This document shows positions 28,422 to 64,000 of a stretch of 64,000 bases of DNA, in pieces. The position numbers were made by a program, and so were the translations under genes. The stretch covers positions 186,001-250,000 of the forward strand of contig CP075497.1 in assembly GCA_021613535.1 (NCBI GenBank), in the 5' to 3' direction. Numbering within the stretch: the stretch's first letter is position 1; every line of letters begins with the position of its first letter. Under the pieces are notes generated by a model. That model searched no databases. It saw nothing but the letters and a program-made list of their open reading frames with translations, and was not told where the DNA came from. The DNA is from Adineta vaga (lineage: Eukaryota; Animalia; Rotifera).

Positions 28422-29044
28422 CACGAATGGAAATATTATGGAGTAGAAACTCAAAGTGAGTTAATATTATATATATATGAAGCTTGCACAAGACATTTCG
28501 TCGAAAGTTCATAAGATGTTGCACTTGGTTACCAATGAAAGAGAATTATTCACGAAAAGAAAAAACAAAGAATAGTAGTAACTATTACTTCTTGTGACAC
28601 TCTTCTACATCTTCTATAATGAATAGAAGAAAAGGTTAAAAAATGCGGAAACTTCGGATTTTATCCGAGAGTTGTGTGTACTGCAAAAAGTGTTATGTTG
28701 AGTTATGAATGAATTTTTGTATTGGAATCTATCAGAATAACGGTCATATGCAACCTCATGAATCTATAGAAGATCTATGATAGATACACATATCAGCATT
28801 TTCATAATAGATCATCAGTATCAATAGGTATGGAGATCAGGTTTTTCTCTTTTGATGGTTCTTCTGACTAGCTACAAAACCGAGCATTTGTGAAACTCCA
28901 AAACCTAACACCATCTCATATGTATGACTCACCGATACAACAAACATATCTGTCATTTGTGAAAAAAATGGCATATTTTTTTTCATAATTTTTTGTATTG
29001 GTTGAATTGAATTAGCCAATAAGTGACCTTGCTATAGGTGATTA

Positions 29045-31718: not shown

Positions 31719-32732
31719 TTATTTAGTTTTCACAGATTCAAGATTGTTTCTGTATCTTTTGAGATTCGGGTGGTTCGAAGGTAATGATTGTTCTCCAATT
31801 TCTATTGCCTGCTGATAAAATGAACGAGCTTTAGGATAATTCTTTGCACTAATATATACGTGACCAATGTTGTTGTAAGACATACCCAAGTGAGGATGAT
31901 TTGGCGGAAGTGATTGCTTTTGAATTACCAGAGCTTCGTCGTATGAAGAAAGTGCTCTCTCGTAATCACCCATGCTGTAATATACTAAACCTATGTTGTT
32001 GTAAGATGCAGCCAAGTCAGGATGGTTTGGAGGAAGTGATTTTAAATCAATAGCAAGCACTTTCTTATAATATAAAAGTGCTTTTTCGTAATCACCCATG
32101 CAGTTATACACATTACCAATATTGTTATAAGATTTAGCCAAGTCTGAATGATTTTCAGAAAGTGATTCTTGTCGAATTGTCAAAGCTTTGTTGTGAGCAG
32201 AAAGTGCTTCCAAATTGTTACCCATATTATAAAATGCATTGCCCATCCAGTTATACACATTTGCCATATCAATTGAGCTAGTAGAAAGTGTTCTTTGATG
32301 AATGCCAAGTGATTTCTCATACAATTTTATTGCTTCATCATATTTTCCCTGATTAATTTTAACCATACCGAGTTGATAGTAAATCGAAGCCTTTTCAACG
32401 TCACTCGTTGTTTTATCAAGTAAAGTCCAATAAATTTCTTCAGCTCTATTATATTCACCCATCATTAATAACAGTGCACCTGCTCGATACCATGGATCTT
32501 TATCAGAATAACTTTCTGCTCGAATATATTCACTCAATTTACATAATTCTGGATCATTTTCACTTGTCAGTGTTAAATACACTTCATATAGATGATCTTC
32601 ATTAGACATTGGTCTGATATCATTGATACGAAATACTGAATGCATCGAAAACAGTACTTCATCTTCTCTTTTATAAGCACTAATTTTAGCTACGGATGCA
32701 AATGGTGTTGTTGTTTGAGCAGGATTGACTGA
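31719..32732 (-). pseudogene. 3' half of an ART-TPR gene, cut within the ART domain
   Basis: Frame extends upstream of the listed ORF as VNPAQTTTPFASVAKISAYKREDEVLFSMHSVFRI (paralog: INPETTSTPFAS...EEDEILF); homology stops at ~32730; TPR part intact. Confidence 0.85.
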
Positions 32733-32850
32733 GTAGCTGCCTAATTCGACTTATAATATAAATGGATTTTCATTACTATATATCTATACATCTATAAACA
32801 GATATAGATATAGATATAGATATAGATATACACCTATAGATATAGAAACA

Positions 32851-35800
32851 TATAGATATATATACCTCACCCATGTTAAGTTAGGAATATAGGAATAGAT
32901 ATAGTTTCATTTATATATAGATATAGATATATATACCTCACCCATGTTAAGTTAGGAATATAGGAATAGATATAGTTTCATTTATGTATAGATATATATA
33001 CCTCACCCATGTTATGTTAGGAATATAGGAATAGATAAAGTTTCATTTATATATAGATATATATACCTCACCCATATTAAGTTAGGAATATAGGAATCGA
33101 TATAGTTTCATTTATATATAGATATATATACCTCACCCATGTTAAGTTAGGAATATAGGAATAGATATAGTTTCATTTATATATAGATATATATACCTCA
33201 CCCATGTTAAGTTAGGAATATAGGAATAGATATAGTTTCATTTATATATAGATATATATACCTCACCCATGTTAAGTTAGGAATATAGGAATAGATATAG
33301 TTTCATTTATATATAGATATATATAGATATATATACCTCACCCATGTTAAGTTAGGAATATAGGAATAGATATAGTTTCATTTATGTATAGATATATATA
33401 CCTCACCCATGTTAAGTTAGGAATATAGGAATCGATATAGTTTCATTTATATATAGATATATATACCTCACCCATGTTAAGTTAGGAATATAGGAATAGA
33501 TATAGTTTCATTTATATATAGATATATATACCTCACCCATGTTAAGTTAGGAATATAGGAATAGATATAGTTTCATTTATATATAGATATATAGATATAT
33601 ATACCTCACCCATGTTAAGTTAGGAATATAGGAATAGATATAGTTTCATTTATGTATAGATATATATACCTCACCCATGTTATGTTAGGAATATAGGAAT
33701 AGATAAAGTTTCATTTATATATAGATATATATACCTCACCCATGTTATGTTAGGAATATAGGAATAGATAAAGTTTCATTTATATATAGATATATATACC
33801 TCACCCATGTTAAGTTAGGAATATAGGAATAGATATAGTTTCATTTATATATAGATATATATACCTCACCCATGTTAAGTTAGGAATATAGGAATAGATA
33901 TAGTTTCATTTATATATAGATATATAGATATATATACCTCACCCATGTTAAGTTAGGAATATAGGAATAGATATAGTTTCATTTATATATAGATATATAT
34001 ACCTCACCCATGTTAAGTTAGGAATATAGGAATAGATATAGTTTCATTTATATATATATATATATACCTCACCCATGTTAAGTTAGGAATATAGGAATAG
34101 ATATAGTTTCATTTATATATAGATATATAGATATATATACCTCACCCATGTTAAGTTAGGAATATAGGAATAGATATAGTTTCATTTATGTATAGATATA
34201 TATACCTCACCCATGTTATGTTAGGAATATAGGAATAGATATAGTTTCATTTATATATAGATATATATACCTCACCCATGTTAAGTTAGGAATATAGGAA
34301 TAGATATAGTTTCATTTATATATAGATATATATACCTCACCCATGTTAAGTTAGGAATATAGGAATAGATATAGTTTCATTTATGTATAGATATATATAC
34401 CTCACCCATGTTATGTTAGGAATATAGGAATCGATATAGTTTCATTTATATATAGATATATATACCTCACCCATGTTAAGTTAGGAATATAGGAATAGAT
34501 ATAGTTTCATTTATATATAGATATATATACCTCACCCATGTTAAGTTAGGAATATAGGAATAGATATAGTTTCATTTATATATAGATATATATACCTCAC
34601 CCATGTTAAGTTAGGAATATAGGAATAGATATAGTTTCATTTATATATAGATATATAGATATATATACCTCACCCATGTTAAGTTAGGAATATAGGAATA
34701 GATATAGTTTCATTTATGTATAGATATATATACCTCACCCATGTTATGTTAGGAATATAGGAATAGATAAAGTTTCATTTATATATAGATATATATACCT
34801 CACCCATGTTAAGTTAGGAATATAGGAATCGATATAGTTTCATTTATATATAGATATATATACCTCACCCATGTTAAGTTAGGAATATAGGAATAGATAT
34901 AGTTTCATTTATATATAGATATATATACCTCACCCATGTTAAGTTAGGAATATAGGAATAGATATAGTTTCATTTATATATAGATATATATACCTCACCC
35001 ATGTTAAGTTAGGAATATAGGAATAGATATAGTTTCATTTATATATAGATATATAGATATATATACCTCACCCATGTTAAGTTAGGAATATAGGAATAGA
35101 TATAGTTTCATTTATGTATAGATATATATACCTCACCCATGTTATGTTAGGAATATAGGAATAGATAAAGTTTCATTTATATATAGATATATATACCTCA
35201 CCCATGTTAAGTTAGGAATATAGGAATAGATATAGTTTCATTTATATATAGATATATATACCTCACCCATGTTAAGTTAGGAATATAGGAATAGATATAG
35301 TTTCATTTATATATAGATATATATACCTCACCCATGTTAAGTTAGGAATATAGGAATAGATATAGTTTCATTTATATATAGATATATAGATATATATACC
35401 TCACCCATGTTAAGTTAGGAATATAGGAATAGATATAGTTTCATTTATGTATAGATATATATACCTCACCCATGTTATGTTAGGAATATAGGAATAGATA
35501 AAGTTTCATTTATATATAGATATATATACCTCACCCATGTTAAGTTAGGAATATAGGAATAGATATAGTTTCATTTATATATAGATATATATACCTCACC
35601 CATGTTAAGTTAGGAATATAGGAATAGATATAGTTTCATTTATATATAGATATATAGATATATATACCTCACCCATGTTAAGTTAGGAATATAGGAATAG
35701 ATATAGTTTCATTTATGTATAGATATATATACCTCACCCATGTTATGTTAGGAATATAGGAATAGATAAAGTTTCATTTATATATAGATATATATACCTC

Positions 35801-38800
35801 ACCCATGTTAAGTTAGGAATATAGGAATCGATATAGTTTCATTTATATATAGATATATATACCTCACCCATGTTAAGTTAGGAATATAGGAATAGATATA
35901 GTTTCATTTATATATAGATATATATACCTCACCCATGTTAAGTTAGGAATATAGGAATAGATATAGTTTCATTTATATATAGATATATATACCTCACCCA
36001 TGTTAAGTTAGGAATATAGGAATAGATATAGTTTCATTTATATATAGATATATAGATATATATACCTCACCCATGTTATGTTAGGAATATAGGAATAGAT
36101 AAAGTTTCATTTATATATAGATATATATACCTCACCCATGTTAAGTTAGGAATATAGGAATCGATATAGTTTCATTTATATATAGATATATATACCTCAC
36201 CCATGTTAAGTTAGGAATATAGGAATAGATATAGTTTCATTTATATATAGATATATATACCTCACCCATGTTAAGTTAGGAATATAGGAATAGATATAGT
36301 TTCATTTATATATAGATATATATACCTCACCCATGTTAAGTTAGGAATATAGGAATCGATATAGTTTCATTTATATATAGATATATATACCTCACCCATG
36401 TTAAGTTAGGAATATAGGAATAGATATAGTTTCATTTATATATAGATATATATACCTCACCCATGTTAAGTTAGGAATATAGGAATAGATATAGTTTCAT
36501 TTATATATAGATATATAGATATATATACCTCACCCATGTTAAGTTAGGAATATAGGAATAGATATAGTTTCATTTATGTATAGATATATATACCTCACCC
36601 ATGTTATGTTAGGAATATAGGAATAGATAAAGTTTCATTTATATATAGATATATATACCTCACCCATGTTAAGTTAGGAATATAGGAATCGATATAGTTT
36701 CATTTATATATAGATATATATACCTCACCCATGTTAAGTTAGGAATATAGGAATAGATATAGTTTCATTTATATATAGATATATAGATATATATACCTCA
36801 CCCATGTTAAGTTAGGAATATAGGAATAGATATAGTTTCATTTATGTATAGATATATATACCTCACCCATGTTATGTTAGGAATATAGGAATAGATAAAG
36901 TTTCATTTATATATAGATATATATACCTCACCCATGTTATGTTAGGAATATAGGAATAGATAAAGTTTCATTTATATATAGATATATATACCTCACCCAT
37001 GTTAAGTTAGGAATATAGGAATAGATATAGTTTCATTTATATATAGATATATATACCTCACCCATGTTAAGTTAGGAATATAGGAATAGATATAGTTTCA
37101 TTTATATATAGATATATAGATATATATACCTCACCCATGTTAAGTTAGGAATATAGGAATAGATATAGTTTCATTTATGTATAGATATATATACCTCACC
37201 CATGTTATGTTAGGAATATAGGAATAGATATAGTTTCATTTATATATAGATATATAGATATATATACCTCACCCATGTTAAGTTAGGAATATAGGAATAG
37301 ATATAGTTTCATTTATGTATAGATATATATACCTCACCCATGTTATGTTAGGAATATAGGAATAGATATAGTTTCATTTATATATAGATATATATACCTC
37401 ACCCATGTTAAGTTAGGAATATAGGAATAGATATAGTTTCATTTATATATAGATATATAGATATATATACCTCACCCATGTTATGTTAGGAATATAGGAA
37501 TAGATAAAGTTTCATTTATATATAGATATATATACCTCACCCATGTTAAGTTAGGAATATAGGAATCGATATAGTTTCATTTATATATAGATATATATAC
37601 CTCACCCATGTTAAGTTAGGAATATAGGAATAGATATAGTTTCATTTATATATAGATATATATACCTCACCCATGTTAAGTTAGGAATATAGGAATAGAT
37701 ATAGTTTCATTTATATATAGATATATATACCTCACCCATGTTAAGTTAGGAATATAGGAATCGATATAGTTTCATTTATATATAGATATATATACCTCAC
37801 CCATGTTAAGTTAGGAATATAGGAATAGATATAGTTTCATTTATATATAGATATATATACCTCACCCATGTTAAGTTAGGAATATAGGAATAGATATAGT
37901 TTCATTTATGTATAGATATATATACCTCACCCATGTTATGTTAGGAATATAGGAATAGATAAAGTTTCATTTATATATAGATATATATATACCTCACCCA
38001 TGTTATGTTAGGAATATAGGAATAGATAAAGTTTCATTTATATATAGATATATATACCTCACCCATGTTAAGTTAGGAATATAGGAATAGATATAGTTTC
38101 ATTTATATATAGATATATATACCTCACCCATGTTAAGTTAGGAATATAGGAATAGATATAGTTTCATTTATATATAGATATATAGATATATATACCTCAC
38201 CCATGTTAAGTTAGGAATATAGGAATAGATATAGTTTCATTTATGTATAGATATATATACCTCACCCATGTTATGTTAGGAATATAGGAATAGATATAGT
38301 TTCATTTATATATAGATATATAGATATATATACCTCACCCATGTTAAGTTAGGAATATAGGAATAGATATAGTTTCATTTATGTATAGATATATATACCT
38401 CACCCATGTTATGTTAGGAATATAGGAATAGATATAGTTTCATTTATATATAGATATATATACCTCACCCATGTTAAGTTAGGAATATAGGAATAGATAT
38501 AGTTTCATTTATATATAGATATATATACCTCACCCATGTTAAGTTAGGAATATAGGAATAGATATAGTTTCATTTATATATAGATATATATACCTCACCC
38601 ATGTTAAGTTAGGAATATAGGAATAGATATAGTTTCATTTATGTATAGATATATATACCTCACCCATGTTATGTTAGGAATATAGGAATAGATAAAGTTT
38701 CATTTATATATAGATATATATACCTCACCCATGTTAAGTTAGGAATATAGGAATCGATATAGTTTCATTTATATATAGATATATATACCTCACCCATGTT

Positions 38801-41800
38801 AAGTTAGGAATATAGGAATAGATATAGTTTCATTTATATATAGATATATATACCTCACCCATGTTAAGTTAGGAATATAGGAATAGATATAGTTTCATTT
38901 ATATATAGATATATATACCTCACCCATGTTAAGTTAGGAATATAGGAATAGATATAGTTTCATTTATATATAGATATATAGATATATATACCTCACCCAT
39001 GTTATGTTAGGAATATAGGAATAGATAAAGTTTCATTTATATATAGATATATATACCTCACCCATGTTAAGTTAGGAATATAGGAATCGATATAGTTTCA
39101 TTTATATATAGATATATATACCTCACCCATGTTAAGTTAGGAATATAGGAATAGATATAGTTTCATTTATATATATAGATATATATACCTCACCCATGTT
39201 AAGTTAGGAATATAGGAATAGATATAGTTTCATTTATATATAGATATATATACCTCACCCATGTTAAGTTAGGAATATAGGAATCGATATAGTTTCATTT
39301 ATATATAGATATATATACCTCACCCATGTTAAGTTAGGAATATAGGAATAGATATAGTTTCATTTATATATAGATATATATACCTCACCCATGTTAAGTT
39401 AGGAATATAGGAATAGATATAGTTTCATTTATATATAGATATATAGATATATATACCTCACCCATGTTAAGTTAGGAATATAGGAATAGATATAGTTTCA
39501 TTTATGTATAGATATATATACCTCACCCATGTTATGTTAGGAATATAGGAATAGATAAAGTTTCATTTATATATAGATATATATACCTCACCCATGTTAA
39601 GTTAGGAATATAGGAATCGATATAGTTTCATTTATATATAGATATATATACCTCACCCATGTTAAGTTAGGAATATAGGAATAGATATAGTTTCATTTAT
39701 ATATAGATATATAGATATATATACCTCACCCATGTTAAGTTAGGAATATAGGAATAGATATAGTTTCATTTATGTATAGATATATATACCTCACCCATGT
39801 TATGTTAGGAATATAGGAATAGATAAAGTTTCATTTATATATAGATATATATACCTCACCCATGTTATGTTAGGAATATAGGAATAGATAAAGTTTCATT
39901 TATATATAGATATATATACCTCACCCATGTTAAGTTAGGAATATAGGAATAGATATAGTTTCATTTATATATAGATATATATACCTCACCCATGTTAAGT
40001 TAGGAATATAGGAATAGATATAGTTTCATTTATATATAGATATATAGATATATATACCTCACCCATGTTAAGTTAGGAATATAGGAATAGATATAGTTTC
40101 ATTTATGTATAGATATATATACCTCACCCATGTTATGTTAGGAATATAGGAATAGATAAAGTTTCATTTATATATAGATATATATACCTCACCCATGTTA
40201 AGTTAGGAATATAGGAATAGATATAGTTTCATTTATATATAGATATATAGATATATATACCTCACCCATGTTAAGTTAGGAATATAGGAATAGATATAGT
40301 TTCATTTATGTATAGATATATATACCCTCACCCATGTTATGTTAGGAATATAGGAATAGATAAAGTTTCATTTATATATAGATATATATACCTCACCCAT
40401 GTTATGTTAGGAATATAGGAATAGATAAAGTTTCATTTATATATAGATATATATACCTCACCCATGTTAAGTTAGGAATATAGGAATAGATATAGTTTCA
40501 TTTATATATAGATATATATACCTCACCCATGTTAAGTTAGGAATATAGGAATAGATATAGTTTCATTTATATATAGATATATAGATATATATACCTCACC
40601 CATGTTAAGTTAGGAATATAGGAATAGATATAGTTTCATTTATGTATAGATATATAGATATATATACCTCACCCATGTTAAGTTAGGAATATAGGAATAG
40701 ATATAGTTTCATTTATGTATAGATATATATACCTCACCCATGTTATGTTAGGAATATAGGAATAGATAAAGTTTCATTTATATATAGATATATATACCTC
40801 ACCCATGTTAAGTTAGGAATATAGGAATCGATATAGTTTCATTTATATATAGATATATATACCTCACCCATGTTAAGTTAGGAATATAGGAATAGATATA
40901 GTTTCATTTATATATAGATATATATACCTCACCCATGTTAAGTTAGGAATATAGGAATAGATATAGTTTCATTTATATATAGATATATATACCTCACCCA
41001 TGTTAAGTTAGGAATATAGGAATCGATATAGTTTCATTTATATATAGATATATATACCTCACCCATGTTAAGTTAGGAATATAGGAATAGATATAGTTTC
41101 ATTTATATATAGATATATATACCTCACCCATGTTAAGTTAGGAATATAGGAATAGATATAGTTTCATTTATATATAGATATATATACCTCACCCATGTTA
41201 AGTTAGGAATAATAGGAATAGATATAGTTTCATTTATATATAGATATATATACCTCACCCATGTTAAGTTAGGAATATAGGAATAGATATAGTTTCATTT
41301 ATATATAGATATATATACCTCACCCATGTTAAGTTAGGAATATAGGAATAGATATAGTTTCATTTATATATAGATATATAGATATATATACCTCACCCAT
41401 GTTAAGTTAGGAATATAGGAATAGATATAGTTTCATTTATGTATAGATATATATACCTCACCCATGTTATGTTAGGAATATAGGAATAGATATAGTTTCA
41501 TTTATATATAGATATATATACCTCACCCATGTTAAGTTAGGAATATAGGAATCGATATAGTTTCATTTATATATAGATATATATACCTCACCCATGTTAA
41601 GTTAGGAATATAGGAATAGATATAGTTTCATTTATATATAGATATATAGATATATATACCTCACCCATGTTAAGTTAGGAATATAGGAATAGATATAGTT
41701 TCATTTATGTATAGATATATATACCTCACCCATGTTATGTTAGGAATATAGGAATAGATAAAGTTTCATTTATATATAGATATATATACCTCACCCATGT

Positions 41801-44800
41801 TAAGTTAGGAATATAGGAATCGATATAGTTTCATTTATATATAGATATATATACCTCACCCATGTTAAGTTAGGAATATAGGAATAGATATAGTTTCATT
41901 TATATATAGATATATAGATATATATACCTCACCCATGTTAAGTTAGGAATATAGGAATAGATATAGTTTCATTTATGTATAGATATATATACCTCACCCA
42001 TGTTATGTTAGGAATATAGGAATAGATAAAGTTTCATTTATATATAGATATATATACCTCACCCATGTTAAGTTAGGAATATAGGAATCGATATAGTTTC
42101 ATTTATATATAGATATATATACCTCACCCATGTTAAGTTAGGAATATAGGAATAGATATAGTTTCATTTATATATAGATATATAGATATATATACCTCAC
42201 CCATGTTAAGTTAGGAATATAGGAATAGATATAGTTTCATTTATGTATAGATATATATACCTCACCCATGTTATGTTAGGAATATAGGAATAGATAAAGT
42301 TTCATTTATATATAGATATATATACCTCACCCATGTTATGTTAGGAATATAGGAATAGATAAAGTTTCATTTATATATAGATATATATACCTCACCCATG
42401 TTAAGTTAGGAATATAGGAATAGATATAGTTTCATTTATATATAGATATATATACCTCACCCATGTTAAGTTAGGAATATAGGAATAGATATAGTTTCAT
42501 TTATATATAGATATATAGATATATATACCTCACCCATGTTAAGTTAGGAATATAGGAATAGATATAGTTTCATTTATGTATAGATATATATACCTCACCC
42601 ATGTTATGTTAGGAATATAGGAATAGATATAGTTTCATTTATATATAGATATATATACCTCACCCATGTTAAGTTAGGAATATAGGAATAGATATAGTTT
42701 CATTTATATATAGATATATATACCTCACCCATGTTAAGTTAGGAATATAGGAATAGATATAGTTTCATTTATATATAGATATATATACCTCACCCATGTT
42801 AAGTTAGGAATATAGGAATAGATATAGTTTCATTTATATATAGATATATATACCTCACCCATGTTAAGTTAGGAATATAGGAATAGATATAGTTTCATTT
42901 ATATATAGATATATATACCTCACCCATGTTAAGTTAGGAATATAGGAATAGATATAGTTTCATTTATGTATAGATATATATACCTCACCCATGTTATGTT
43001 AGGAATATAGGAATAGATAAAGTTTCATTTATATATAGATATATATACCTCACCCATGTTAAGTTAGGAATATAGGAATCGATATAGTTTCATTTATATA
43101 TAGATATATATACCTCACCCATGTTAAGTTAGGAATATAGGAATAGATATAGTTTCATTTATATATAGATATATATACCTCACCCATGTTAAGTTAGGAA
43201 TATAGGAATAGATATAGTTTCATTTATATATAGATATATATACCTCACCCATGTTAAGTTAGGAATATAGGAATAGATATAGTTTCATTTATATATAGAT
43301 ATATAGATATATATACCTCACCCATGTTAAGTTAGGAATATAGGAATAGATATAGTTTCATTTATGTATAGATATATATACCTCACCCATGTTATGTTAG
43401 GAATATAGGAATAGATAAAGTTTCATTTATATATAGATATATATACCTCACCCATGTTAAGTTAGGAATATAGGAATCGATATAGTTTCATTTATATATA
43501 GATATATATACCTCACCCATGTTAAGTTAGGAATATAGGAATAGATAAAGTTTCATTTATATATAGATATATATACCTCACCCATGTTAAGTTAGGAATA
43601 TAGGAATAGATATAGTTTCATTTATGTATAGATATATATACCTCACCCATGTTATGTTAGGAATATAGGAATAGATAAAGTTTCATTTATATATAGATAT
43701 ATATACCTCACCCATGTTATGTTAGGAATATAGGAATAGATAAAGTTTCATTTATATATAGATATATATACCTCACCCATGTTAAGTTAGGAATATAGGA
43801 ATAGATATAGTTTCATTTATATATAGATATATATACCTCACCCATGTTATGTTAGGAATATAGGAATAGATAAAGTTTCATTTATATATAGATATATATA
43901 CCTCACCCATGTTAAGTTAGGAATATAGGAATAGATATAGTTTCATTTATATATAGATATATATACCTCACCCATGTTAAGTTAGGAATATAGGAATAGA
44001 TATAGTTTCATTTATATATAGATATATATACCTCACCCATGTTAAGTTAGGAATATAGGAATAGATATAGTTTCATTTATATATAGATATATATACCTCA
44101 CCCATGTTAAGTTAGGAATATAGGAATAGATATAGTTTCATTTATATATAGATATATATACCTCACCCATGTTAAGTTAGGAATATAGGAATAGATATAG
44201 TTTCATTTATATATAGATATATATACCTCACCCATGTTAAGTTAGGAATATAGGAATAGATATAGTTTCATTTATATATAGATATATATATACCTCACCC
44301 ATGTTAAGTTAGGAATATAGGAATAGATATAGTTTCATTTATATAGATATATATATATATACCTCACCCATGTTAAGTTAGGAATATAGGAATAGATATA
44401 GTTTCATTTATGTATAGATATATATACCTCACCCATGTTATGTTAGGAATATAGGAATAGATAAAGTTTCATTTATATATAGATATATATACCTCACCCA
44501 TGTTAAGTTAGGAATATAGGAATCGATATAGTTTCATTTATATATAGATATATATACCTCACCCATGTTAAGTTAGGAATATAGGAATAGATATAGTTTC
44601 ATTTATATATAGATATATATATACCTCACCCATGTTATGTTAGGAATATAGGAATAGATAAGTTTCATTTATATATAGATATATATACCTCACCCATGTT
44701 ATGTTAGGAATATAGGAATAGATAAAGTTTCATTTATATATAGATATATATACCTCACCCATGTTAAGTTAGGAATATAGGAATAGATATAGTTTCATTT

Positions 44801-50800: not shown

Positions 50801-53800
50801 TAGATATAGTTTCATTTATATATAGATATATATACCTCACCCATGTTAAGTTAGGAATATAGGAATAGATATAGTTTCATATATATATAGATATATATAC
50901 CTCACCCATGTTAAGTTAGGAATATAGGAATAGATATAGTTTCATTTATATATAGATATATATACCTCACCCATGTTAAGTTAGGAATATAGGAATAGAT
51001 ATAGTTTCATTTATATATAGATATATATATATATATACCTCACCCATGTTAAGTTAGGAATATAGGAATAGATATAGTTTCATTTATATATAGATATATA
51101 TACCTCACCCATGTTAAGTTAGGAATATAGGAATAGATATAGTTTCATTTATATATAGATATATATACCTCACCCATGTTAAGTTAGGAATATAGGAATA
51201 GATATAGTTTCATTTATATATAGATATATATACCTCACCCATGTTAAGTTAGGAATATAGGAATAGATATAGTTTCATTTATATATAGATATATATACCT
51301 CACCCATGTTAAGTTAGGAATATAGGAATAGATATAGTTTCATTTATATATATATATATATACCTCACCCATGTTAAGTTAGGAATATAGGAATAGATAT
51401 AGTTTCATTTATATATAGATATATATACCTCACCCATGTTAAGTTAGGAATATAGGAATAGATATAGTTTCATTTATATATAGATATATATACCTCACCC
51501 ATGTTAAGTTAGGAATATAGGAATAGATAAAGTTTCATTTATATATAGATATATATACCTCACCCATGTTAAGTTAGGAATATAGGAATAGATATAGTTT
51601 CATTTATATATAGATATATATACCTCACCCATGTTAAGTTAGGAATATAGGAATAGATATAGTTTCATTTATATATAGATATATATACCTCACCCATGTT
51701 AAGTTAGGAATATAGGAATAGATATAGTTTCATTTATATATAGATATATATACCTCACCCATGTTAAGTTAGGAATATAGGAATAGATATAGTTTCATTT
51801 ATATATAGATATATAGATATATATACCTCACCCATGTTAAGTTAGGAATATAGGAATAGATATAGTTTCATTTATGTATAGATATATATACCTCACCCAT
51901 GTTATGTTAGGAATATAGGAATAGATATAGTTTCATTTATATATAGATATATATACCTCACCCATGTTAAGTTAGGAATATAGGAATCGATATAGTTTCA
52001 TTTATATATAGATATATATACCTCACCCATGTTAAGTTAGGAATATAGGAATAGATATAGTTTCATTTATATATAGATATATATACCTCACCCATGTTAA
52101 GTTAGGAATATAGGAATAGATATAGTTTCATTTATATATAGATATATATACCTCACCCATGTTAAGTTAGGAATATAGGAATAGATATAGTTTCATTTAT
52201 ATATAGATATATATACCTCACCCATGTTAAGTTAGGAATATAGGAATAGATATAGTTTCATTTATATATAGATATATATATACCTCACCCATGTTAAGTT
52301 AGGAATATAGGAATAGATATAGTTTCATTTATATATAGATATATATACCTCACCCATGTTAAGTTAGGAATATAGGAATAGATATAGTTTCATTTATATA
52401 TAGATATATATACCTCACCCATGTTAAGTTAGGAATATAGGAATAGATATAGTTTCATTTATATATAGATATATATACCTCACCCATGTTAAGTTAGGAA
52501 TATAGGAATAGATATAGTTTCATTTATATATAGATATATATACCTCACCCATGTTAAGTTAGGAATATAGGAATAGATATAGTTTCATTTATATATAGAT
52601 ATATATACCTCACCCATGTTAAGTTAGGAATATAGGAATAGATATAGTTTCATTTATATATAGATATATATACCTCACCCATGTTAAGTTAGGAATATAG
52701 GAATAGATATAGTTTCATTTATATATAGATATATATACCTCACCCATGTTAAGTTAGGAATATAGGAATCGATATAGTTTCATTTATATATAGATATATA
52801 TACCTCACCCATGTTAAGTTAGGAATATAGGAATAGATATAGTTTCATTTATATATAGATATATATACCTCACCCATGTTAAGTTAGGAATATAGGAATA
52901 GATATAGTTTCATTTATATATAGATATATATACCTCACCCATGTTAAGTTAGGAATATAGGAATAGATATAGTTTCATTTATATATAGATATATAGATAT
53001 ATATACCTCACCCATGTTAAGTTAGGAATATAGGAATAGATATAGTTTCATTTATATATAGATATATATACCTCACCCATGTTATGTTAGGAATATAGGA
53101 ATAGATATAGTTTCATTTATATATAGATATATATACCTCACCCATGTTAAGTTAGGAATATAGGAATAGATATAGTTTCATTTATATATAGATATATATA
53201 CCTCACCCATGTTAAGTTAGGAATATAGGAATAGATATAGTTTCATTTATATATAGATATATAGATATATATACCTCACCCATGTTAAGTTAGGAATATA
53301 GGAATAGATATAGTTTCATTTATATATAGATATATATACCTCACCCATGTTAAGTTAGGAATATAGGAATAGATATAGTTTCATTTATATATAGATATAT
53401 ATACCTCACCCATGTTAAGTTAGGAATATAGGAATAGATATAGTTTCATTTATATATAGATATATATACCTCACCCATGTTATGTTAGGAATACAGGAAC
53501 AGATATAGTTTCATTTATATATAGATATATATATACCTCACCCATGTTATGTTAGGAATACAGGAATAGATATAGTTTCATTTAAATATAGATATATATA
53601 TACCTCACCCATGTTATGTTAGGAATACAGGAATAGATATAGTTTCGTTTAAATATAGATATATATACCTCACCCATGTTAAGTTAGGAATATAGGAATA
53701 GATATAGTTTCATTTTATATATAGATATATATACCTCACCCATGTTAAGTTAGGAATATAGGAATAGATATAGTTTCATTTATATATAGATATATATACC

Positions 53801-55395
53801 TCACCCATGTTAAGTTAGGAATATAGGAATAGATATAGTTTCATTTATATATAGATATATATACCTCACCCATGTTAAGTTAGGAATATAGGAATAGATA
53901 TAGTTTCATTTATATATAGATATATAGATATATATACCTCACCCATGTTAAGTTAGGAATATAGGAATAGATATAGTTTCATTTATATATAGATATATAT
54001 ACCTCACCCATGTTAAGTTAGGAATATAGGAATAGATATAGTTTCATTTATATATAGATATATATACCTCACCCATGTTAAGTTAGGAATATAGGAATAG
54101 ATATAGTTTCATTTATATATAGATATATAGATATATATACCTCACCCATGTTAAGTTAGGAATATAGGAATAGATATAGTTTCATTTATATATAGATATA
54201 TAGATACCTCACCCATGTTAAGTTAGGAATATAGGAATAGATATAGTTTCATTTATATATAGATATATATACCTCACCCATGTTAAGTTAGGAATATAGG
54301 AATAGATATAGTTTCATTTATATATAGATATATAGATATATATACCTCACCCATGTTAAGTTAGGAATATAGGAATAGATATAGTTTCATTTATGTATAG
54401 ATATATATACCGTAAACATGTTAAGTTAGGAATATAGGAATAGATATAGTTTCATTTATATATAGATATATATACCTCACCCATGTTATGTTAGGAATAC
54501 AGGAATAGATATAGTTTCATTTATATATAGATATATATATACCTCACCCATGTTATGTTAGGAATACAGGAATAGATATAGTTTCGTTTATATATAGATA
54601 TATATACCTCACCCATGTTAAGTTAGGAATATAGGAATAGATATAGTTTCATTTATATATAGATATATATACCTCACCCATGTTAAGTTAGGAATATAGG
54701 AATAGATATAGTTTCATTTATATATAGATATATATACCTCACCCATGTTAAGTTAGGAATATAGGAATAGATATAGTTTCATTTATATATAGATATATAT
54801 ACCTCACCCATGTTAAGTTAGGAATATAGGAATAGATATAGTTTCATTTATATATAGATATATATACACTCACCCATGTTCAGTTAGGAATATAGGAATA
54901 GATATAGTTTCATTTATATATAGATATATATACCTCACCCATGTTAAGTTAGGAATATAGGAATAGATATAGTTTCATTTATATATAATATATATATATA
55001 TACCTCACCCATGTTAAGTTAGGAATATAGGAATAGATATAGTTTCATTTATGTATAGATATATATACCTCACCCATGTTATGTTAGGAATATAGGAATA
55101 GATAAAGTTTCATTTATATATAGATATATATACCTCACCCATGTTAAGTTAGGAATATAGGAATCGATATAGTTTCATTTATATATAGATATATATACCT
55201 CACCCATGTTAAGTTAGGAATATAGGAATAGATATAGTTTCATTTATATATAGATATATATACCTCACCCATGTTAAGTTAGGAATATAGGAATAGATAT
55301 AGTTTCATTTATATATAGATATATATACCTCACCCATGTTAAGTTAGGAATATAGGAATAGATATAGTTTCATTTATATATAGATATATAGATAT
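32851..55395. repeat. ~22.5 kb tandem array of a 65-bp unit (roughly 340 copies, estimated from length/unit)
   Basis: Consensus ATGTTAAGTTAGGAATATAGGAATAGATATAGTTTCATTTATATATAGATATATATACCTCACCC; frequent 73-bp variants with an extra AGATATAT. Confidence 0.98.
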
Positions 55396-57377
55396 GTTTG
55401 GAAAGTTTTAGTGAGAGCAAAATGTTTGTTAGAATCGAATGTTCAAGTGAAATCGCGTTAGATGTAGGTCTTTTTCAGCTTGTGCTGATATAGGTATGGA
55501 GAAAGAACACCTTCAAAATGTCGGGCTTTCGAGGATAGTGGACTTTCTAGTGTATCTGTCCTTCGGGGGTATCTGTCCTTCGAGGGTACCGGGTTTTCTG
55601 CGCGGCGCCTACTCCTTCCTCGGACCCACGCGCTGCTTAGGAGCGCATTGTGGGTCTTTGGGGTTTTTTGATAAATGGACCCTGCAGGCGAGTGAATGAG
55701 TGTAGCGTGGGTGTCTCGCTTTCTTTGACGATCAGTTAACAGCAGATTTCTTGATTTTCAAAGGTGATGAATTTGTTTTATTCGGGATAGTAATATATAT
55801 GCTTATGATCCATCTGCTTCTGCTAGAAGGCTGATTTCGTAAATTTCTAAATTTTCAAGTGTTTCGAACAACGATCACGGCGATACTCCCCTTTACACAC
55901 AAGCTCAAGATTTCAATCGCTCATATATAATATTTGAATTATTGAACTGAATGATTCAGAATTGAGATCGAAAGTTTTGGTCTTACATTCCTTTATAAGT
56001 ACACTCACACGCTCAAATTTATATGACTGTGTTTATCTATATCTATACAACTATAACTGTATAACAATAAATAAATCTATTCCTGTCGTTGCCTATTCTA
56101 TACAGTGTCGGTAAGATAGGTTTATTTGTTTATTTTATAAATCATATATGACTGTGGTATAGCCATTTGTTTCATAATTCGCAAAATGCAACTCATGCGA
56201 TATTCTCTTATAGTGAAACCACGACAACTATTACTTCGAGTCATCTATATCTGTATATTTTTGCGAATTTACTCGTATACTCGTGTAAATCGCGATATTG
56301 AATAATATATAGCATCATCATCGCCGTTCATGGGACAACTTTGAGCAGTAATATGCAACTATTTTGAAAAGTTTTAATCGGAATTTTCAATTGAAAAACT
56401 TATCTTACGAAATTGTTTTACTTTCAGCTGAAATAAATTTTTTAAATTGATAACAAAATTTTCTATTGAAACCGAATGTCACATTTGATTTGTATGCCAT
56501 GTTAGGGGTAGGGATAGATTTAGTTTAAGACTGAATTATATAGATATACATAGGTATTATTGTTTTTGTAGGAGTATATTTAAGTTCTGATTTAGTTTGA
56601 TATATTGAGGAATGCGTGCAGGTTGGAAATTATCACTAATGATGGATAGGTTTGTTTTGTGTTTGCATATATATTCCTATAGTTTTTCTTTTAAGTTCAT
56701 GAATGGAGAGAAAGTACTTTTTTCTTTCGTGTTTTGTTAATTTGATTTGAATAGGTTGGATTTATATTGATTTAAAATTTTTCTACTTCATTTTAATATT
56801 TTTAGAAATTATTATACTGAGTATAATATTTATTTTTCTATTTATTCTTTGGGTGCATATCATTTAGTTGCGTTTTTTTGTTCCAGGGGTTGTACGAATT
56901 TTATTATATGAATATAGTCTTTGCTGTGATGGACGAGAAGAAGGAAAGAATTGTCGAGGTGAATACTGCACTTTGGTCTATACATCTTCAGAAAGAAGAT
57001 GTTTTATATAGGCGTCTCTATTACATTCTTTGTTTTACGTTTGCTGTTAGTAATCAATTCAAGGGTAAATGTTGTTGAAATTTAGTCGGATTCGTTTCGA
57101 TTTATATACGTCGACGGTATGTTACCTTTGTTTGTGGGTATGTATAAATATCGAAATTTTATTCGTACATAGAAGTGATAAATTTTTCGTCGATTCATCC
57201 GCTGTACCGTCGAATTTATATTTTTTATTTTAGAATGCGTGATTAAGTCTATCAAACATTATTACTGTTATTATTCAAGTGGTGAAATTCGTTATTATTG
57301 ATTTATTTTTGAATTTAAATATTCTGATACATATTTAAATCTTATCAAATATTTGTTTGCTGAAAAGTCGTTTGAAT

Positions 57378-60300
57378 ATGTTGTCTCGTTTACAAAAGCC
57401 AAGTCTTCGTGATTTTATGATGATGCAAGGACAAACTCGAACACGATTATGTGTTAATAGTGCCATTTTTGATCCATGTGAAAAGTTGACGGAATTAACA
57501 CCGTTTGAAAAGGCATCACTTATGTCTTGGTATTCCGACACCACTGTTGACAAAGGTCTCAATCTGTATATATTGTTACATTATTTATCTGCTGTGAATA
57601 ACAATTCATATTATTATCACTATGTAAATAATGGTAATCCTGATGGTACAAATATGTTCGGACATGTGATTGGTACATCTGGTAATTATTGAAAATATAT
57701 CGCTATCTATTTTCCAAACAACGCGTCATCTTTACATAGGTAGTGGTAAATCATCAGCTTTAACACCTCATATGGATGCGTTAAATCGAACGTTGTCACA
57801 AATGGATATCAAGCAAGAATATATCCAAAAACCAAATAAAAACATCGAGTTGTTATTTGAACAACCATTCATTGTTTCAAATGTAAGAAAAACATTGTAG
57901 ATACTATTTTATTTGTTTTATCGTATTGTAGTCGACAACTCTTCAAGTATTCCGAAGTTTAATATATGGTAATCGCATATTGTGTTCGACCGAATGCGAT
58001 ACATTACTTTCGAATTTGGGTGTTTATGGAAATCAATACAATGATCCTCGTTTTGCTGAAAATGTCAATATGCTTATTCAAATGTTCGATGGAACTAAAC
58101 ATCAGAATCGAGCAACTCTTTCCACATCATACAATATTCCTGAAGGAAGACGTGCTTCAATTATTGGTGCAAGTGTTGGCGATCCATATGCACGTGTATC
58201 TCAACAACATTACGAGTAGGACTGAATAAGACTTTGAATTTTTCTAAATCTATTCATCTACATAGAGGAAATGGTGTTAGTGGTGCTCATAATCGTTTCA
58301 CACATTATCCTTGTCCTGTTATGAAAGCTATCAAAACCAATTCTGGTACCAGTGGAGTGGTATCGAATATGGTACCATCACTTCAACATGTATATACAGT
58401 ATCGTTTTTGCTGGATAAAGTTGAATATATCCCACGACAGAATGTATATGACAAATCCGAAAAGAAACAATCAAGTAAATATGCTTTTCAATTTATTCAT
58501 GATGTTTGTTTATTTTTTCCTCTAGACGTATTTCATTCGGACGTTGAAGAGAAATGGAATCGTTTACGTCCGACATCTGATCGTGAATATTGTCACTCGC
58601 CTTCAAAAATCAAAATTGATCTTGAAGCAGCTGAAAATGATGCTTCATATGAACACAGTAAAAGTGCTCATTATTATATGTTCAATCGTGTTTATCAGCA
58701 ATGGCAAGAAGCTACAGAAACGGAAAAACAGGAACATGAAGCTATCATTAGCTTTAAAAATTCAACGAAAATTCCTCGGTAATAAATATTCAGTGTATGC
58801 ATTTTGAATTATTTGTTATTGACCAAATTTAGTTTTATTTGTAATTTTGCTCGATTTCGAACAATTATGGATATTTTATGGGATGATGATGTGTATCCAT
58901 TGATTGAAATATCAGAAATCGTTAAATCACCATACCGTGTTTCCGATGATTTTATTGACGCTGTTAAAAAGGTTATCGAAAAACGATTTCCAGTAAATTT
59001 ACGTACAGATGATGGCACGAAAATCGTCGTTATTGAAAAAAGCACTGCTATTATGGGTGACTTATTTTTTGGTCATGTTGACTATGTGTCTCGACAATTG
59101 TTTGATCTATCTTCAATTCAAGAAAAATTTAGTGCATCTCCGATTGTATCTCGATTACAAAATAGGTATGTTTTTCTTTACTTGACTTGCGCGATTTATT
59201 TCATTAACAGTAGTGGTGGTGCCCAAGAAAAGAACAGTTCCGGTGTAACTGTGTATGCCGATGCTTTGGTTATAATCTTATCGAAATTCATTTTTTTTTC
59301 AACAGCTACATTCACTTCTTATCGAGAATTTCATAACAATAAAGAACGATTATCGGCAGCGATCAAATACTTAATTGACAATGGATTAGTATTTCAACCA
59401 TTGAACAAAAGTCGATTTATCAAAGGAACTCGTTCAAGTTATGCAATGGCAACACCCAAGCAAATCAAGCAAAATAACTTGGCTATTGAAGCATTGATCA
59501 ATTTGAATTTAACTACAATTGATTATGAACAATTGTGGCAAGATTGCTTATTATTTTCACCTGATGTTGCATCAAAAATCGATAAAACTGCAATTGATCA
59601 TATTAATTCTAATTTAATTGATTATATTTCAATTATTCACCGTTTGGGTGATGCCAATGATCCTGTTGCTCAAGAAATTTTAAAGCCTGGCTTATTTAAT
59701 GGTCAAATTGGTATCAATCCTTTAGCAAATACATTTTCTTTGTCACCAGAACACACCCTTCAATCCAAAGATGATGATTACATTACGAATCTAATGCATA
59801 AACTGTGCATTTCGGCTGTTGCTCAAACCCAAAACAACGACTCATCAAAAAAAGAACGAACGTCATTAACCGTCCACAATCATCCGATCAATAATACTGA
59901 AACAACCATGATCGATTTATCTGAAAATGTTCAACGGCTACAAACGCAATTCCAATCTTCATCAATTTCTATCGATGTTCTTTCAAGTAAAAACGATCGA
60001 ATCGAAAATTCTAGAGATCAAGTTTTATTGAAAGAAAAAGGTAAGCTGTTATCATATAAAAAATATGTCTTTATTAAATATTTTGATTTGTTTGCAATCC
60101 AGGGAATGAAACTTTTTCAATGTCGCATATGGACAGCATCATCATGAATGAATATGTAAACGTATCTGAAGCACTCGATACTGGTAAAATGATTTTTCAC
60201 ATAGATCAAATATATTTGATTTTTTTTTCTTAAGAATTGGAAAATAATCATGCGAAAACGAAAATTATCCACAATGATGTAGAAATTATTTATAACATGG

Positions 60301-61740
60301 ATTATACAAGTAAAAGACATTGACTAATATTCCCTTGTTGTGATATTATTTTTATTCTTTCCTCAGATAATTCAACTTCAGATATTAATAAATCCTTACC
60401 AACTGCTTTCAAAAGTATCGTTGTAGAAAATATGTCCGCTATTGATATCATGAATATTGATACAGCAACTGACCGTATGTAAAACATATATCTTAATGCG
60501 AATCTTTTATCCGTTCATTTAGTTTCGACTTCTGTTGAATATGATTATGTACTCGATGTTTCTATGAATATTCATACTGCTGATTCAAGTTTACAACAAC
60601 AACAACAACAACAACGACGAAATCAGGTCTTATATTTCTAATGATTTCATTGGATTTTCAAACTATCTTCTTTAGGAATCGTTTTCTGAACTTTCATCAT
60701 TTGTTTCAACTGAAAAGAATAATGACGAACATCATGATTATTTTGAATCCAATTCTATGGAAACCGGTATCTAGACAGTTGAATTTTTTCTCATGCATCT
60801 AGTGGTCACATTTAGATTTTCAATCCGATTTCAAAACAACATCATTTTCCCATACAACATCTACTGAATATATCAATGTATCAAAAGATATGAATGAAAA
60901 TTCTACTGAAAGCAATACTGAAAGCAATACCGAACCAAATACAACTCCTGGTAAAATCAACAAAGTTTTATATAATCTTTTATTTTTATATTTTTCTAAA
61001 TTAGAACTTGTTGCTTTATCAAAGAGACTTATGTTAAAATCATTTATTGCATTTACAAAAACAGATGTTACTCGATTATTTAATAGTGCTGAAACAAAAA
61101 ATTCTGTTATTGGATATTTAAAACATCATAAATTGATTAAGGAAATTGCTGATTTATTTGTATCAAGTATTCCAACAAAAAAAACAATCAAATATGAGAC
61201 TGGCTATGTAAAAATATTTCCTGCTTCTAAATCGGCATCTGACACATCTTCTTTTGAATCCAAACTTCGAGTAACAGTTGGAATTGGATTAGATGAATAT
61301 ATTGATAATGTTTTGATCGATGAAAACTTACCGACAGAAAGTCCAATTGTTAACAACATATTTAATACAACATATCATAAATGGTTATTAAATCGTCATT
61401 GGTACGATAAAATCAAAGCTGGAGAAGTTAATGTATATTTTCAAAACAAAGTTAAATGCTTAGAAGAGAACATTAGTTCTCCTATTCAGCCTATTACTAC
61501 AATATCAAAGGATAACGGTAAAGAAACATTCAATTCTTTTCAATTCAATTGTATAAAAAATTTCATTTTTTTACTTCAGTTATTGATTTGTTTGATCAGC
61601 CACGCTCCAGTATGACTTCTACTCAACGAACAGACAAGGAATTACGACGACTTGGTGTTAAACGACAAAAAAAGTCGAATAATGAACCATTACCAAAACG
61701 ACAACGAAAACCAAAACGATTTCCTGACGATGATCAATAA
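57378..61740 (+). CDS. Multi-exon DUF3987-like (MCM-related AAA+) P-loop ATPase/putative helicase with possible winged-helix regions and a basic C-terminal NLS
   Basis: Splicing 57682-57739, 57883-57931 and 58216-58265 gives NMFGHVIGTSGSGKSSA (Walker A), ILCSTECDTLL (Walker B-like), LIQMFDG...RAT, SIIGAS and SGAHNRF (Arg finger); ends PKRQRKPKRFPDDDQ-stop; start codon and exons at 60.0-60.9 kb uncertain. Confidence 0.7.
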
Positions 61741-62187
61741 TTACGAACTAATGTATATTTTTATCCTTATCATGTGTGTATTATTTCCATTGATTTTCTA
61801 ACTTCATTTCCATCATTAATATTTGATTTTGTTTTTATATTTGTCTATATTATGTCTATTTCTTCTCACTTTCTTGAGAAAACCTTTTGAAGATTGTTCT
61901 TGTAGTTTTTCTTCTTTCATATTTGAAAATGATTTTCTTTTCTATTCTATACGAAAGAAATTAATAATTGTTATATTTTCATTTCTAGTTGTGAAAATAA
62001 TCTTCTTTCTTTCTATTCCTATTTTAATTTTATTGTCAATCATTGTTATTCTTATCAACATATATAATAAAGAAAGAAGATAAGAAGCTCGAACCGATTG
62101 AAAGCATTCTTTATGCACTAAATAACTTTTTGATTTGATAGCATCTTATTCAAACTTCTAGATAGTACACAAACATTACTATTAGCA

Positions 62188-64000
62188 ATGGACATATCAG
62201 AATCTAATAGAAAATTCTTGTTGAATATTTTCCAATATATTGCACCATCACATATAGCTTTATTCTTACGTCTTATTAGACTGTATCCAATGAATATTCT
62301 CAACGATAATAGGAAGAGAGAACAAACGATTTTGACTATTGTTAATGAAGTTACTGGTAATAACTATCAAGCCGATATTTGGCCAAACATCATGTCGATT
62401 AATCGTCTACCAGAGTTAGTTGAACAAGTTCTACTCAATGATGAACATCAACGATTATTATCGGCTATTGAAAAGTTACAAACAAGATTTGAATTACAAC
62501 CACATCGTTTTCGAATCTATCAACTACTTCCAAAAATCAAAATATGTGTTATATGTGGAAATCAATTGGGAGAAGCCATTTTCGATGAAATATGCATTAT
62601 TATAGGTCGTACTAATATAAATCATGGAGTACTTTATAAGAATGAATGCTGTAATATTGTTTATAAATATGGACATGCACGCAATCGACGAACACGTGAA
62701 AGATTTGTTGTACCAAATGCAATATTCAAACAAGAATATATTCATTTATTCGATCATTTAATATATGAACGCTTATTGTTAATTGGATTTACTAATCTTA
62801 TTCAACAAGCGGCATCGAACTTTCAAACATATACAAGTGCAACTAACGCTGATATTGATCAAAATCGACATTTTAATGAACAAGATTCTACTCAAGATAA
62901 ACTGCAATCAAAATCGTTTGCATCAGTAAATATTGTTAAATGATTATCGATGAAAAAATTCTCATTTTTTTCGATTATTCTCATATTAGACTTGGATATG
63001 GTTTGAAATATCTCGATATCTATTGTTTATGACTAATTCACAGACCATTCAAATTCCAGATATTATCCAGCGCTTATCTCATGATTTATATTTCGAAGCA
63101 AACAGCCTTTATTTTTATGAACTTTTCGTTAAATTTTGGTCTCGACATGGGCAAGTCAAAGGATGTGAATGTCAAGCCAAAGACACATGTATGCTCAATT
63201 TTGTTTTTGACACACATATGAAGGCGCATCGATTAGTATGTGCATACACTGGATCATGTGATGAATCAATACCAGAATTAGGACCTGTAGCTATTGGCTG
63301 TCCTCGTCCACCACTTCGTTCATCATCAAGTATATTAAAAAATGAATTAGGTATGTACAGAGAAGATTGTTCATAATACAGTTGTTGATTCTATGTATTT
63401 TTTTCTTCGAAGTTAATGATAAGATGAAATGTAAATACTATTGTATAAATCATTACAATCAATCTTTAATTAAAAATGATTCACACGATCCTTTAGTTAC
63501 TGAAGCACTTGAACGAGATCGTATTGCAGATTTATTCGAAGCAAATGATGAATGTACCGTTCATCGTGATGAAGATGATAGAGAACATAAACGACGTACT
63601 GCTGGATTTATGGCTATAGTATCCAATTGTAACATTATCATAGGATGGAATGAAAGTGTTCGTTCTGAAGGAATGCGTCGTAATACTTATCATCTATTAA
63701 AATACCTTCATTTAGGTGGAATATTACCACCAGCTGCTGCATATGATTCAGCATGTACTTTTATTGCATATTTAAAAAATCAATATTGTTTATCAATTCA
63801 ACAATCACCTTATGTCGATGAGTTATTACAAAAAAAATACTGTATTGATAGATTTCATAGACGTAACCATACACGACCTGAATGTAAATCAACGTTATCA
63901 TGTTCACATCCTGATAATCGCCCATTTTTCGATAATGAAAATACACAAGTGTGTGAACAATTATTTTCTCATTTCACAAAACTCAAAGCTACTTTACGAT
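62188..64000 (+). CDS. KDZ (Kyakuja-Dileera-Zisupton) transposase with CxC-type cysteine clusters; runs off the window
   Basis: Exons 62188-62925, 62990-63350, 63413-end; CVIC...CCNIVY, FVFDTHMKAHRLVC, GC..PP, YYCINH, RTAGFMAIVSNCNII, RSEG, YDSAC, IDRFHRRNH...C, NTQVCEQ; no stops. Confidence 0.88.

Follow-up and report, generated by a model that had tools for sequence, protein, structure and literature searches.

A probable KDZ-type transposon in a bdelloid rotifer with an MCM-like ATPase gene, a TatD nuclease gene and an expanded end-repeat array

Introduction

Does any eukaryotic DDE transposon carry an AAA+ motor of its own? To our knowledge, eukaryotic cut-and-paste transposons are thought to need a transposase only, sometimes aided by a second protein that binds DNA. 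Having a dedicated AAA+ partner is characteristic of the bacterial elements Mu, Tn7 and IS21, in which MuB, TnsC and IstB control complex assembly and target capture for the DDE transposases with which they are paired. The question is raised by a stretch of 64,000 nucleotides from the bdelloid rotifer Adineta vaga (C6:186001-250000, contig CP075497.1; hereafter the window), taken from an assembly of 100.8 Mb in six contigs with approximately 30% G+C. An initial annotation, made from the letters of the window alone, had listed a cut host gene, a short unique end, a long array of 65-mers, a spacer of approximately 2 kb, a spliced P-loop ATPase gene and a KDZ (Kyakuja-Dileera-Zisupton) transposase gene, and had read them as one mobile element of more than 31 kb in which the ATPase would help with replication or transpososome assembly and to which the array supplies iterated binding or unwinding sites. 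All of the listed parts are present. Giant KDZ members of 31.7 kb in Chlamydomonas and 30.3 kb in Ectocarpus have been described (PMC12730594, PMC12477816, 10.1101/2022.05.23.493040), and excision of the 31.7-kb Zisupton has been observed in Chlamydomonas (PMC12477816, 10.1101/2022.05.23.493040).

Element ends and insertion site

Positions 32731-68795 are probably a single, autonomous KDZ/Zisupton-type cut-and-paste DNA transposon that carries an MCM-like ATPase gene and a TatD nuclease gene and whose end-repeat array has expanded in place. The element spans 36,065 bp, and its right end, found by downstream extension and self-comparison, lies 4.8 kb beyond the window in segment L011 (C6:250001-260000; the window-equivalent coordinate is the L011 coordinate plus 64000). 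With this end and its 8-bp duplication in hand, the proposed single mobile element of more than 31 kb holds, and two parts are added to it: a conserved third gene, TatD, and an inverted mini-array at the right end.

The element ends in imperfect terminal inverted repeats (TIRs), with 30 of 36 positions matching between the left end and the reverse complement of the right end, and a perfect 8-bp target-site duplication, GATTGACT, stands directly outside both. Zisupton target duplications have the same length of 8 bp (PMC12730594). The short unique left end seen earlier is real, but duplication and TIR place the start at 32731 rather than 32733. A small family member of 428 bp (in L020) likewise has a perfect 8-bp duplication, CGATCACT, and thereby fixes the exact element boundaries. 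The terminal end of the family is present at more than 30 other sites in this genome, among them five small paired elements of 257-961 bp with the same ends, most of which have one or two end-repeat units per end. The first 19 bases of the left TIR, which starts GAGTAGCTGCCTAATT, are identical in a Rotaria species (L055:7559).

The insertion splits a host gene of the ART-TPR type approximately 220-255 kb from the contig end. The TPR half matches TPR_12/TPR_10 in Pfam (E 6.5e-53), and its frame, VNPAQTTTPFASV..., runs without a stop over 330 codons and matches a neighbouring paralog at ...INPETTSTPFASI. Directly beyond the right end, the ART half is open over approximately 351 host codons, its host part ending in ...ILFIMKVN plus one base inside the duplication. 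Read separately, the two halves reach their own copies of the duplication in one and the same codon phase, and they match residues that are consecutive in the neighbouring paralog. That both halves are intact and the duplication is perfect speaks for a recent insertion into a host ART-TPR exon near a chromosome end.

Long tandem arrays are hard to assemble, and the length of this one is as assembled, so that a chimeric or inflated array, or false joins, had to be weighed. We give this explanation almost no credence, because the inverted repeats, the target duplication and the in-phase split host gene agree with each other and because an independent data set from 2013 matches 57318-63217, or 5.9 kb of the interior, at 100% identity. 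An irregular mix of 51 unit variants within the array is also typical of real arrays. Hence, the joins that the initial annotation had named as possible chimeras stand.

A conserved and spliced ATPase gene

Within the element the genes follow in the order ATPase, KDZ, TatD, all on the + strand. Removal of a predicted intron at 57682-57739 brings GTSG and SGKSS together in a canonical Walker A motif, GTSGSGKS; the same splice join is found in P0054, an annotated protein of another bdelloid. Exon 57932-58215 contains a Walker B-like L-C-S-T-E, in which the glutamate is kept and threonine takes the place of aspartate, and the ATPase also has an NRF motif within a nearly conserved GxxGxxNRF block. 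The ATPase frames recur piecewise in two diverged copies on contig 1 whose DNA is 70-84% identical, and for exon 57932-58215 the protein is 96-97% identical between copies with approximately 80% identical DNA. Ratios of nonsynonymous to synonymous substitution (dN/dS) are 0.02-0.12 in the nucleoside triphosphatase (NTPase) exons and 0.25-0.39 in the C-terminal exons of the ATPase, compared with 0.14-0.27 in the KDZ exons. Judged by these ratios, summarised as 0.02-0.35 for the gene, the ATPase is under strong purifying selection.

This copy is transcribed and spliced at a low level, because contigs from run X16 (same organism) are 100% identical to it and skip four GT..AG introns (60039-60100, 60183-60233, 60310-60366 and 61517-61578), across all of which the reading phases remain open. 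Separately, runs X14 and X15, which are labelled as other organisms, hold a few contigs of 151-227 bases that are identical or nearly identical to window 57300-63299, one of them spanning the unspliced first intron; these look like DNA carry-over or mislabelling rather than expression.

Relationship of the ATPase to DUF3987 and MCM proteins

Searches and fold modelling used single exons and the annotated spliced ortholog P0042 from Rotaria sordida, the exons of which are 47-88% identical to the window ATPase exons. With a profile built from the DUF3987-like open reading frames (ORFs) of this genome, exons 57932-58216 and 58144-58779 are the top two of 1,942 ORFs in 124 kb (E 1.3e-4 and 4e-3), and hhalign (E 1.4e-3) aligns S-T-E-C-D with the Walker B D-E. 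A phmmer search of P0042 against 1.84 billion representative proteins gave 64 matches, and all of those whose source was checked are bdelloid. Among them are P0101, P0110 and P0111 (E 1.7e-10, 7.2e-5 and 2.8e-4), which score 48.7, 44.4 and 47.2 bits on PF13148; together with P0103, these distant matches pass the Pfam cut-off for DUF3987. One Didymodactylos gene is matched both by the window ATPase exons and by a true DUF3987 ORF. The protein relatives found are all bdelloid, with Adineta ricciae proteins up to 95% identical.

The AlphaFold model of P0042 is of moderate confidence (mean predicted local distance difference test score, pLDDT, 62). After structural re-alignment, the 50 best entries are without exception MCM ATPase domains, with Z of 9.2-10.5 across 208-291 residues, and the alignments fall on the first 400 residues of the model, the compact ones with a root-mean-square deviation of approximately 4 A over 208-234 residues. 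Membership of the ATPase in the DUF3987/MCM-like AAA+ group, as had been proposed for it, is therefore supported by intermediate sequences that pass the Pfam cut-off and by the MCM-like model of the ortholog. Two further searches returned nothing: ESM Atlas gave no usable match for the C-terminal exon, and a true rotifer DUF3987 ORF compared with phages by tblastn matched nothing.

DUF3987 proteins are an MCM-related family of superfamily 6 helicases with demonstrated 5'-3' helicase activity (PMC4889955, PMC11724360). The ATPase could be a replicative helicase, like the DUF3987 proteins of phages and bacterial mobile elements, and the element could move or amplify replicatively, by copy-out or as an extrachromosomal replicon, with the primase and polymerase of the host. 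The MCM-like fold and the DUF3987 kinship are in line with such a role, as are the action of DUF3987 proteins as helicases beside primases (PMC4889955, PMC11724360) and the AT-rich iterated repeats, which resemble origin iterons. However, Pfam scans of the element ORFs detect no primase (AEP or DnaG) or polymerase domain, which makes the replicative helicase our second choice of role. The full-length copies of the family are also few and diverged, the excision known for Zisupton is of the cut-and-paste kind (10.1101/2022.05.23.493040), and the Walker B motif is altered. We consider replicative movement quite unlikely and retain a cut-and-paste element as the preferred reading.

Transposase and nuclease genes

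The last exon of the KDZ gene and a paralog, L037:1297-2106(-), share 68% identity over 257 residues, and the paralog scores 33.7 bits on the Pfam KDZ family PF18758 (cut-off 26.6). The KDZ exon of the window keeps all 15 positions that are invariant among 16 aligned KDZ sequences, including D134, D168, H171, H175, C180 and E204, and the gene is collinear with L055:13350-15334 of Rotaria. The upstream exons (62188-63373) are cysteine-rich and have no Pfam CxC match; the homologous Didymodactylos gene has a weak CxC5 match, and a second bdelloid KDZ lineage passes CxC5 at 38.6 bits. Paralog identity and invariant residues support the earlier assignment of the transposase to the KDZ type.

The third gene encodes a predicted TatD-type nuclease. 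TatD_DNase (PF01026) is matched by three consecutive exons over profile positions 43-208, with 39.6, 29.4 and 17.7 bits (E 5.2e-10, 6.8e-7 and 2.5e-3), a genome scan gives 86.8 bits at C6:252791-253396, and the exon upstream of the Pfam matches contains a DSHCHF motif (the HxH metal motif). TatD lies downstream of KDZ in all three genomic copies, and six exon segments are conserved with Rotaria. In Rotaria sp. Silwood2, a 153-bp tandem repeat of nine copies lies between KDZ and TatD (L055:17833-19214); it has no counterpart in the window and is annotated within an 809-residue TatD fusion product.

Linkage of the genes in this and other bdelloid genomes

If ATPase and transposase belong together, they should be found together elsewhere. 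The copy studied here and the two diverged copies on contig 1 (one at C1:16179026-16194519, hereafter the 16.19 Mb copy; the other, the 18.07 Mb copy, with its left end at C1:18074520) all carry ATPase, KDZ and TatD on one strand. Rotaria sp. Silwood2 has a collinear ATPase, KDZ and TatD, terminal 19 bases that are identical and an 82-bp end repeat present 1.9 times, and Didymodactylos has ATPase followed by KDZ. In a second lineage, found in A. ricciae, A. steineri and R. socialis, a KDZ/DUF3987 pair is conserved in head-to-head arrangement. A genome-wide profile scan of A. vaga recovered 25 ATPase-like loci. For 18 of them a KDZ locus lies no more than 12 kb away, and in 14 of these 18 the ATPase is upstream on the same strand; by our own estimate, approximately 0.1 pairs would be expected if the 25 loci were placed randomly in the genome. 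The ATPase-KDZ pairing, which the initial annotation had proposed from a single locus, is thus real and recurs both within this genome and in bdelloids of three other genera.

The linkage bears on whether the ATPase and TatD genes act outside transposition, as passengers or in interaction with the host, for instance in anti-silencing or DNA repair. Accessory genes are frequent in KDZ elements, TET/JBP in fungi being an example (PMC12730594, PMC12477816), seven ATPase-like loci have no KDZ nearby, and a derivative in R. sordida has ATPase and TatD with most of KDZ lost. Nevertheless, the linkage is kept in tandem and head-to-head arrangements, in four bdelloid genera and with a constant order and spacing. 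The ATPase is under selection at least as strong as that on the transposase, and the ATPase family was found only in bdelloids, mostly adjoining KDZ. A passenger role is unlikely in our judgement, and we favour an ATPase that takes part in transposition.

Pairwise identities order the lineages alike for ATPase and KDZ, except for the last KDZ exon of the 18.07 Mb copy (C1:18066458-18067267, L037). At the protein level this exon is 68% identical to window 63346-64167 (synonymous divergence dS approximately 1.1), compared with 69% for the Rotaria exon, and unlike it the other exons group both contig 1 copies together, a pattern that suggests recombination between family members. The head-to-head lineage (L029/L052; C1:17431424-17432644 and relatives) has a Walker A of its own, G-Y-P-S-V-N-K-S, with asparagine for the last glycine, which is conserved across genera.

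A copy-specific array of end repeats

Tandem Repeats Finder resolves the left array into 339.2 copies of period 65 with 94% matches (score 38849). Splitting it at an anchor motif gives 336 units, 253 of 65 bp and 53 of 73 bp, with the 51 sequence variants scattered irregularly and the commonest of them seen 132 times. Units of the right array are 92-97% identical to those of the left, on the opposite strand.

The number of units differs widely between relatives. In contrast to the 339 left units of 65 bp and approximately six right units found here, the 16.19 Mb copy has 20.7 left units of 51-59 bp and 2.8 right units, the 18.07 Mb copy has 2.5 left units of 57 bp and the Rotaria element has 1.9 left units of 82 bp. 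A core, ACCCATGTTA then GGAATAGAT, is common to the 65-mer and the 51-59-bp units of the 16.19 Mb copy and points inwards at both ends. Thus, the 65-mer is a true end repeat of the family, and its core, being conserved among Adineta units and inward at both ends, is a plausible site for an element protein to bind. At other places in the genome the 65-mer is confined to stretches of up to 540 bp, most of them at sites with a family TIR, and no second large array of it was found genome-wide. The array is therefore linked to the family rather than mostly unlinked, and an independent satellite, which we considered as an origin of the 65-mer, was rejected on the same grounds.

The giant array itself is best read as an expansion in place, specific to this copy and not required by the system, because relatives with approximately 21, 2.5 and 1.9 left units keep the same genes under selection; it also appears recent, because its units are near-identical (132 of 336 are identical). 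The initial annotation had made the array a part of the system that supplies binding or unwinding sites, a claim that these relatives do not support. It had also asked whether other KDZ copies lack ATPase and array: the ATPase is present in them, and the large array is absent. A 22-kb array selected for its size, as a working platform of iterated binding or unwinding sites for the ATPase, might be suggested by the conservation of the unit core between diverged copies, inward at both ends, and by left arrays that exceed right arrays in both copies in which both ends are seen (339 versus approximately 6; 20.7 versus 2.8). We regard this as very unlikely, given that purifying selection maintains all three genes in members with 2-21 units, that no second giant array exists in the genome and that the 132 identical units among 336 point to a very recent expansion.

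Between array and ATPase gene lies the non-coding spacer (55391-57377), which has no Pfam match and nothing meaningful in Rfam; from 55603 on it is 80% identical to the 16.19 Mb copy. It is followed by a series of short reading frames on the + strand. Satellite arrays born from the tandem repeats of a transposon are known from the Tetris foldback elements of Drosophila virilis. As in Tetris, short internal or end repeats have grown into a long homogeneous array; unlike in Tetris, the array here is part of an element that still appears intact, carries genes and has both of its ends as well as a perfect target duplication.

Discussion

Taken as a transposon, the element resembles known Zisupton/KDZ elements in its KDZ-type catalytic domain, TIRs and 8-bp duplication, in a cysteine-rich N-terminal part, here with no Pfam CxC match, and in its accessory genes, its large size and the several exons of its transposase (PMC12730594, PMC12477816, 10.1101/2022.05.23.493040). 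It differs from them in carrying genes for an MCM-like AAA+ ATPase and a TatD nuclease as accessories and in having a bdelloid rotifer as its host; unlike in the giant members, its size comes mostly from the 22.5-kb end-repeat array and not from cargo or nested insertions. In the literature searched, the set of KDZ, ATPase and TatD genes appeared in no paper, no paper combined KDZ names with DUF3987 and none dealt with KDZ elements in bdelloids, and a review of giant eukaryotic transposons does not list a combination of KDZ with DUF3987.

A parallel in layout, and in layout only, is with Mu (MuA/MuB), Tn7 (TnsB/TnsC) and IS21 (IstA/IstB), in which a DDE transposase gene also stands beside an AAA+ gene and is kept with it as a unit. 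Unlike in those elements, the ATPase falls in the MCM-like (DUF3987) branch and not in that of DnaC/IstB or MuB/TnsC, and the setting is eukaryotic, with introns. With the superfamily 6 helicases of the DUF3987 family in phages and bacterial elements (for example AgaPH), the ATPase shares a P-loop Walker A, the Walker B glutamate, an NRF motif at the place of the MCM arginine finger, an MCM-like fold in the model and homology via intermediates (PMC4889955, PMC11724360). In contrast to them it has no primase partner, is linked to a transposase, reads T-E in Walker B and has a conserved extra C-terminal region of approximately 400 residues, and in these searches it is confined to bdelloids.

How might such an element work? 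The KDZ transposase would recognise the TIRs together with the conserved core of the end-repeat units. As a dedicated cofactor, the ATPase may load on DNA in oligomeric form; it would either open or remodel the AT-rich ends, or control how the transposition complex assembles and captures its target. The most likely role for TatD would be to trim or repair DNA ends. The 22.5-kb array could have grown from the left end repeats by unequal exchange or replication slippage. Tentatively, and with clearly less confidence than we place in the transposon itself, we put forward that bdelloid KDZ elements may be the first eukaryotic DDE transposons that depend on an AAA+ motor of their own: an MCM-like ring ATPase would load at the end repeats and license complex assembly or target capture, or drive a replicative step, with growth and shrinkage of the array tuning the loading.

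Several observations weigh against the picture of a KDZ transposon with a dedicated MCM-like ATPase. A part of the ATPase in transposition is something that we infer by analogy with MuB, TnsC and IstB. Neither the window ATPase exons nor P0042 has a direct Pfam match, PF13148 included, and the last KDZ exon of the window has none either. Foldseek of the P0042 model against PDB gave no match at E <= 0.001 (best E >= 0.02), with the pLDDT of the model only 62, and no homolog was found outside Bdelloidea, the naming searches reaching close relatives only. The Walker B of this lineage is T-E, not D-E. The RNA-backed introns all lie outside the NTPase part, for which the introns come from homology and the annotation of another species, and the ATPase sequence is almost absent from RNA runs of the same species, so that expression is low or conditional. 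In R. sordida, the derivative L053 (CAJNOT010000819.1) keeps TatD and the complete ATPase gene with most of KDZ gone, and because it retains them the accessory genes might have an independent life. Finally, the array length is as assembled.

If the picture is true, the bdelloid transposase-ATPase(-nuclease) module would extend the two-component logic to animals and provide a setting in which to study what a DDE transposase gains from an MCM-like motor. The element would also show a satellite-size array arising within a still-intact transposon, and its defined ends and genes make it a possible tool for large-cargo transposition.

Features and neighbouring sequence

Table 1 Coordinates of the element, its parts and the interrupted host gene (window coordinates unless marked L011).
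Feature	Coordinates	Strand	Basis or remark
C-terminal (TPR) half of interrupted host ART-TPR gene, including left target duplication	31719..32730	-	TPR_12/TPR_10 Pfam matches
Left 8-bp target-site duplication GATTGACT	32723..32730	.	Same 8-mer directly outside right end
Left TIR	32731..32773	+	Starts GAGTAGCTGCCTAATT
Left end-repeat array, 339 x 65 bp, 22.5 kb	32850..55390	+	Tandem Repeats Finder
Non-coding spacer, ~2 kb	55391..57377	+	Upstream of ATPase gene
Multi-exon gene for putative MCM-like (DUF3987-related) AAA+ ATPase	57378..61740	+	Splice, conservation, profile and fold-model evidence
ATPase exons traced, first part	57378-57681, 57740-57882, 57932-58215, 58266-58779	+	
ATPase exons traced, second part	~58834-60038, 60101-60182, 60234-60309, 60367 onward, up to 61516; 61579-61740	+	
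Putative KDZ transposase gene	62188..64167 (167 bp past window end)	+	Exons ~62188-62940, 62990-63373, 63397-64167
Predicted TatD-type nuclease gene	L011:2353-3590 (window-equivalent 66353-67590)	+	Pfam TatD_DNase, three exons
Right end-repeat array, ~6 inverted 65-mers and AT-rich tail	L011:4248-4733 (window-equivalent 68248-68733)	opposite strand	Self-comparison
Right TIR	L011:4753-4795		Junction comparison with left end
Right target duplication GATTGACT	L011:4796-4803		Perfect copy of left 8-mer
N-terminal (ART) half of host gene	L011:4796-5849	-	Open frame, 352-aa ORF, directly beyond element

Upstream of the element lie a paralog of the split ART-TPR host gene and a multi-exon gene that, from our own reading of its translations, we take to be Sec61-alpha-like (window 26356-28454 (-) and 29516-30937 (-)). 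The TPR-coding part of the host gene itself contains a 126-bp tandem repeat of 2.8 copies (31863-32209).

Downstream, 32 kb beyond the element, window-equivalent 100647-100877 (L007/L008) holds an inverted copy of 55398-55700 that is 88-91% identical and has no TIR or 65-mer alongside; it probably derives from a family member as a stray fragment. This inverted match of 300 bp was considered as the pair of element ends and rejected, because the target duplication and the split host gene put the ends elsewhere. A perfect pair of 761-bp inverted repeats, 2.8 kb apart, at window-equivalent 93724-94484 and 97281-98041 (C6:279724-284041; L013/L014) belongs to another transposon.

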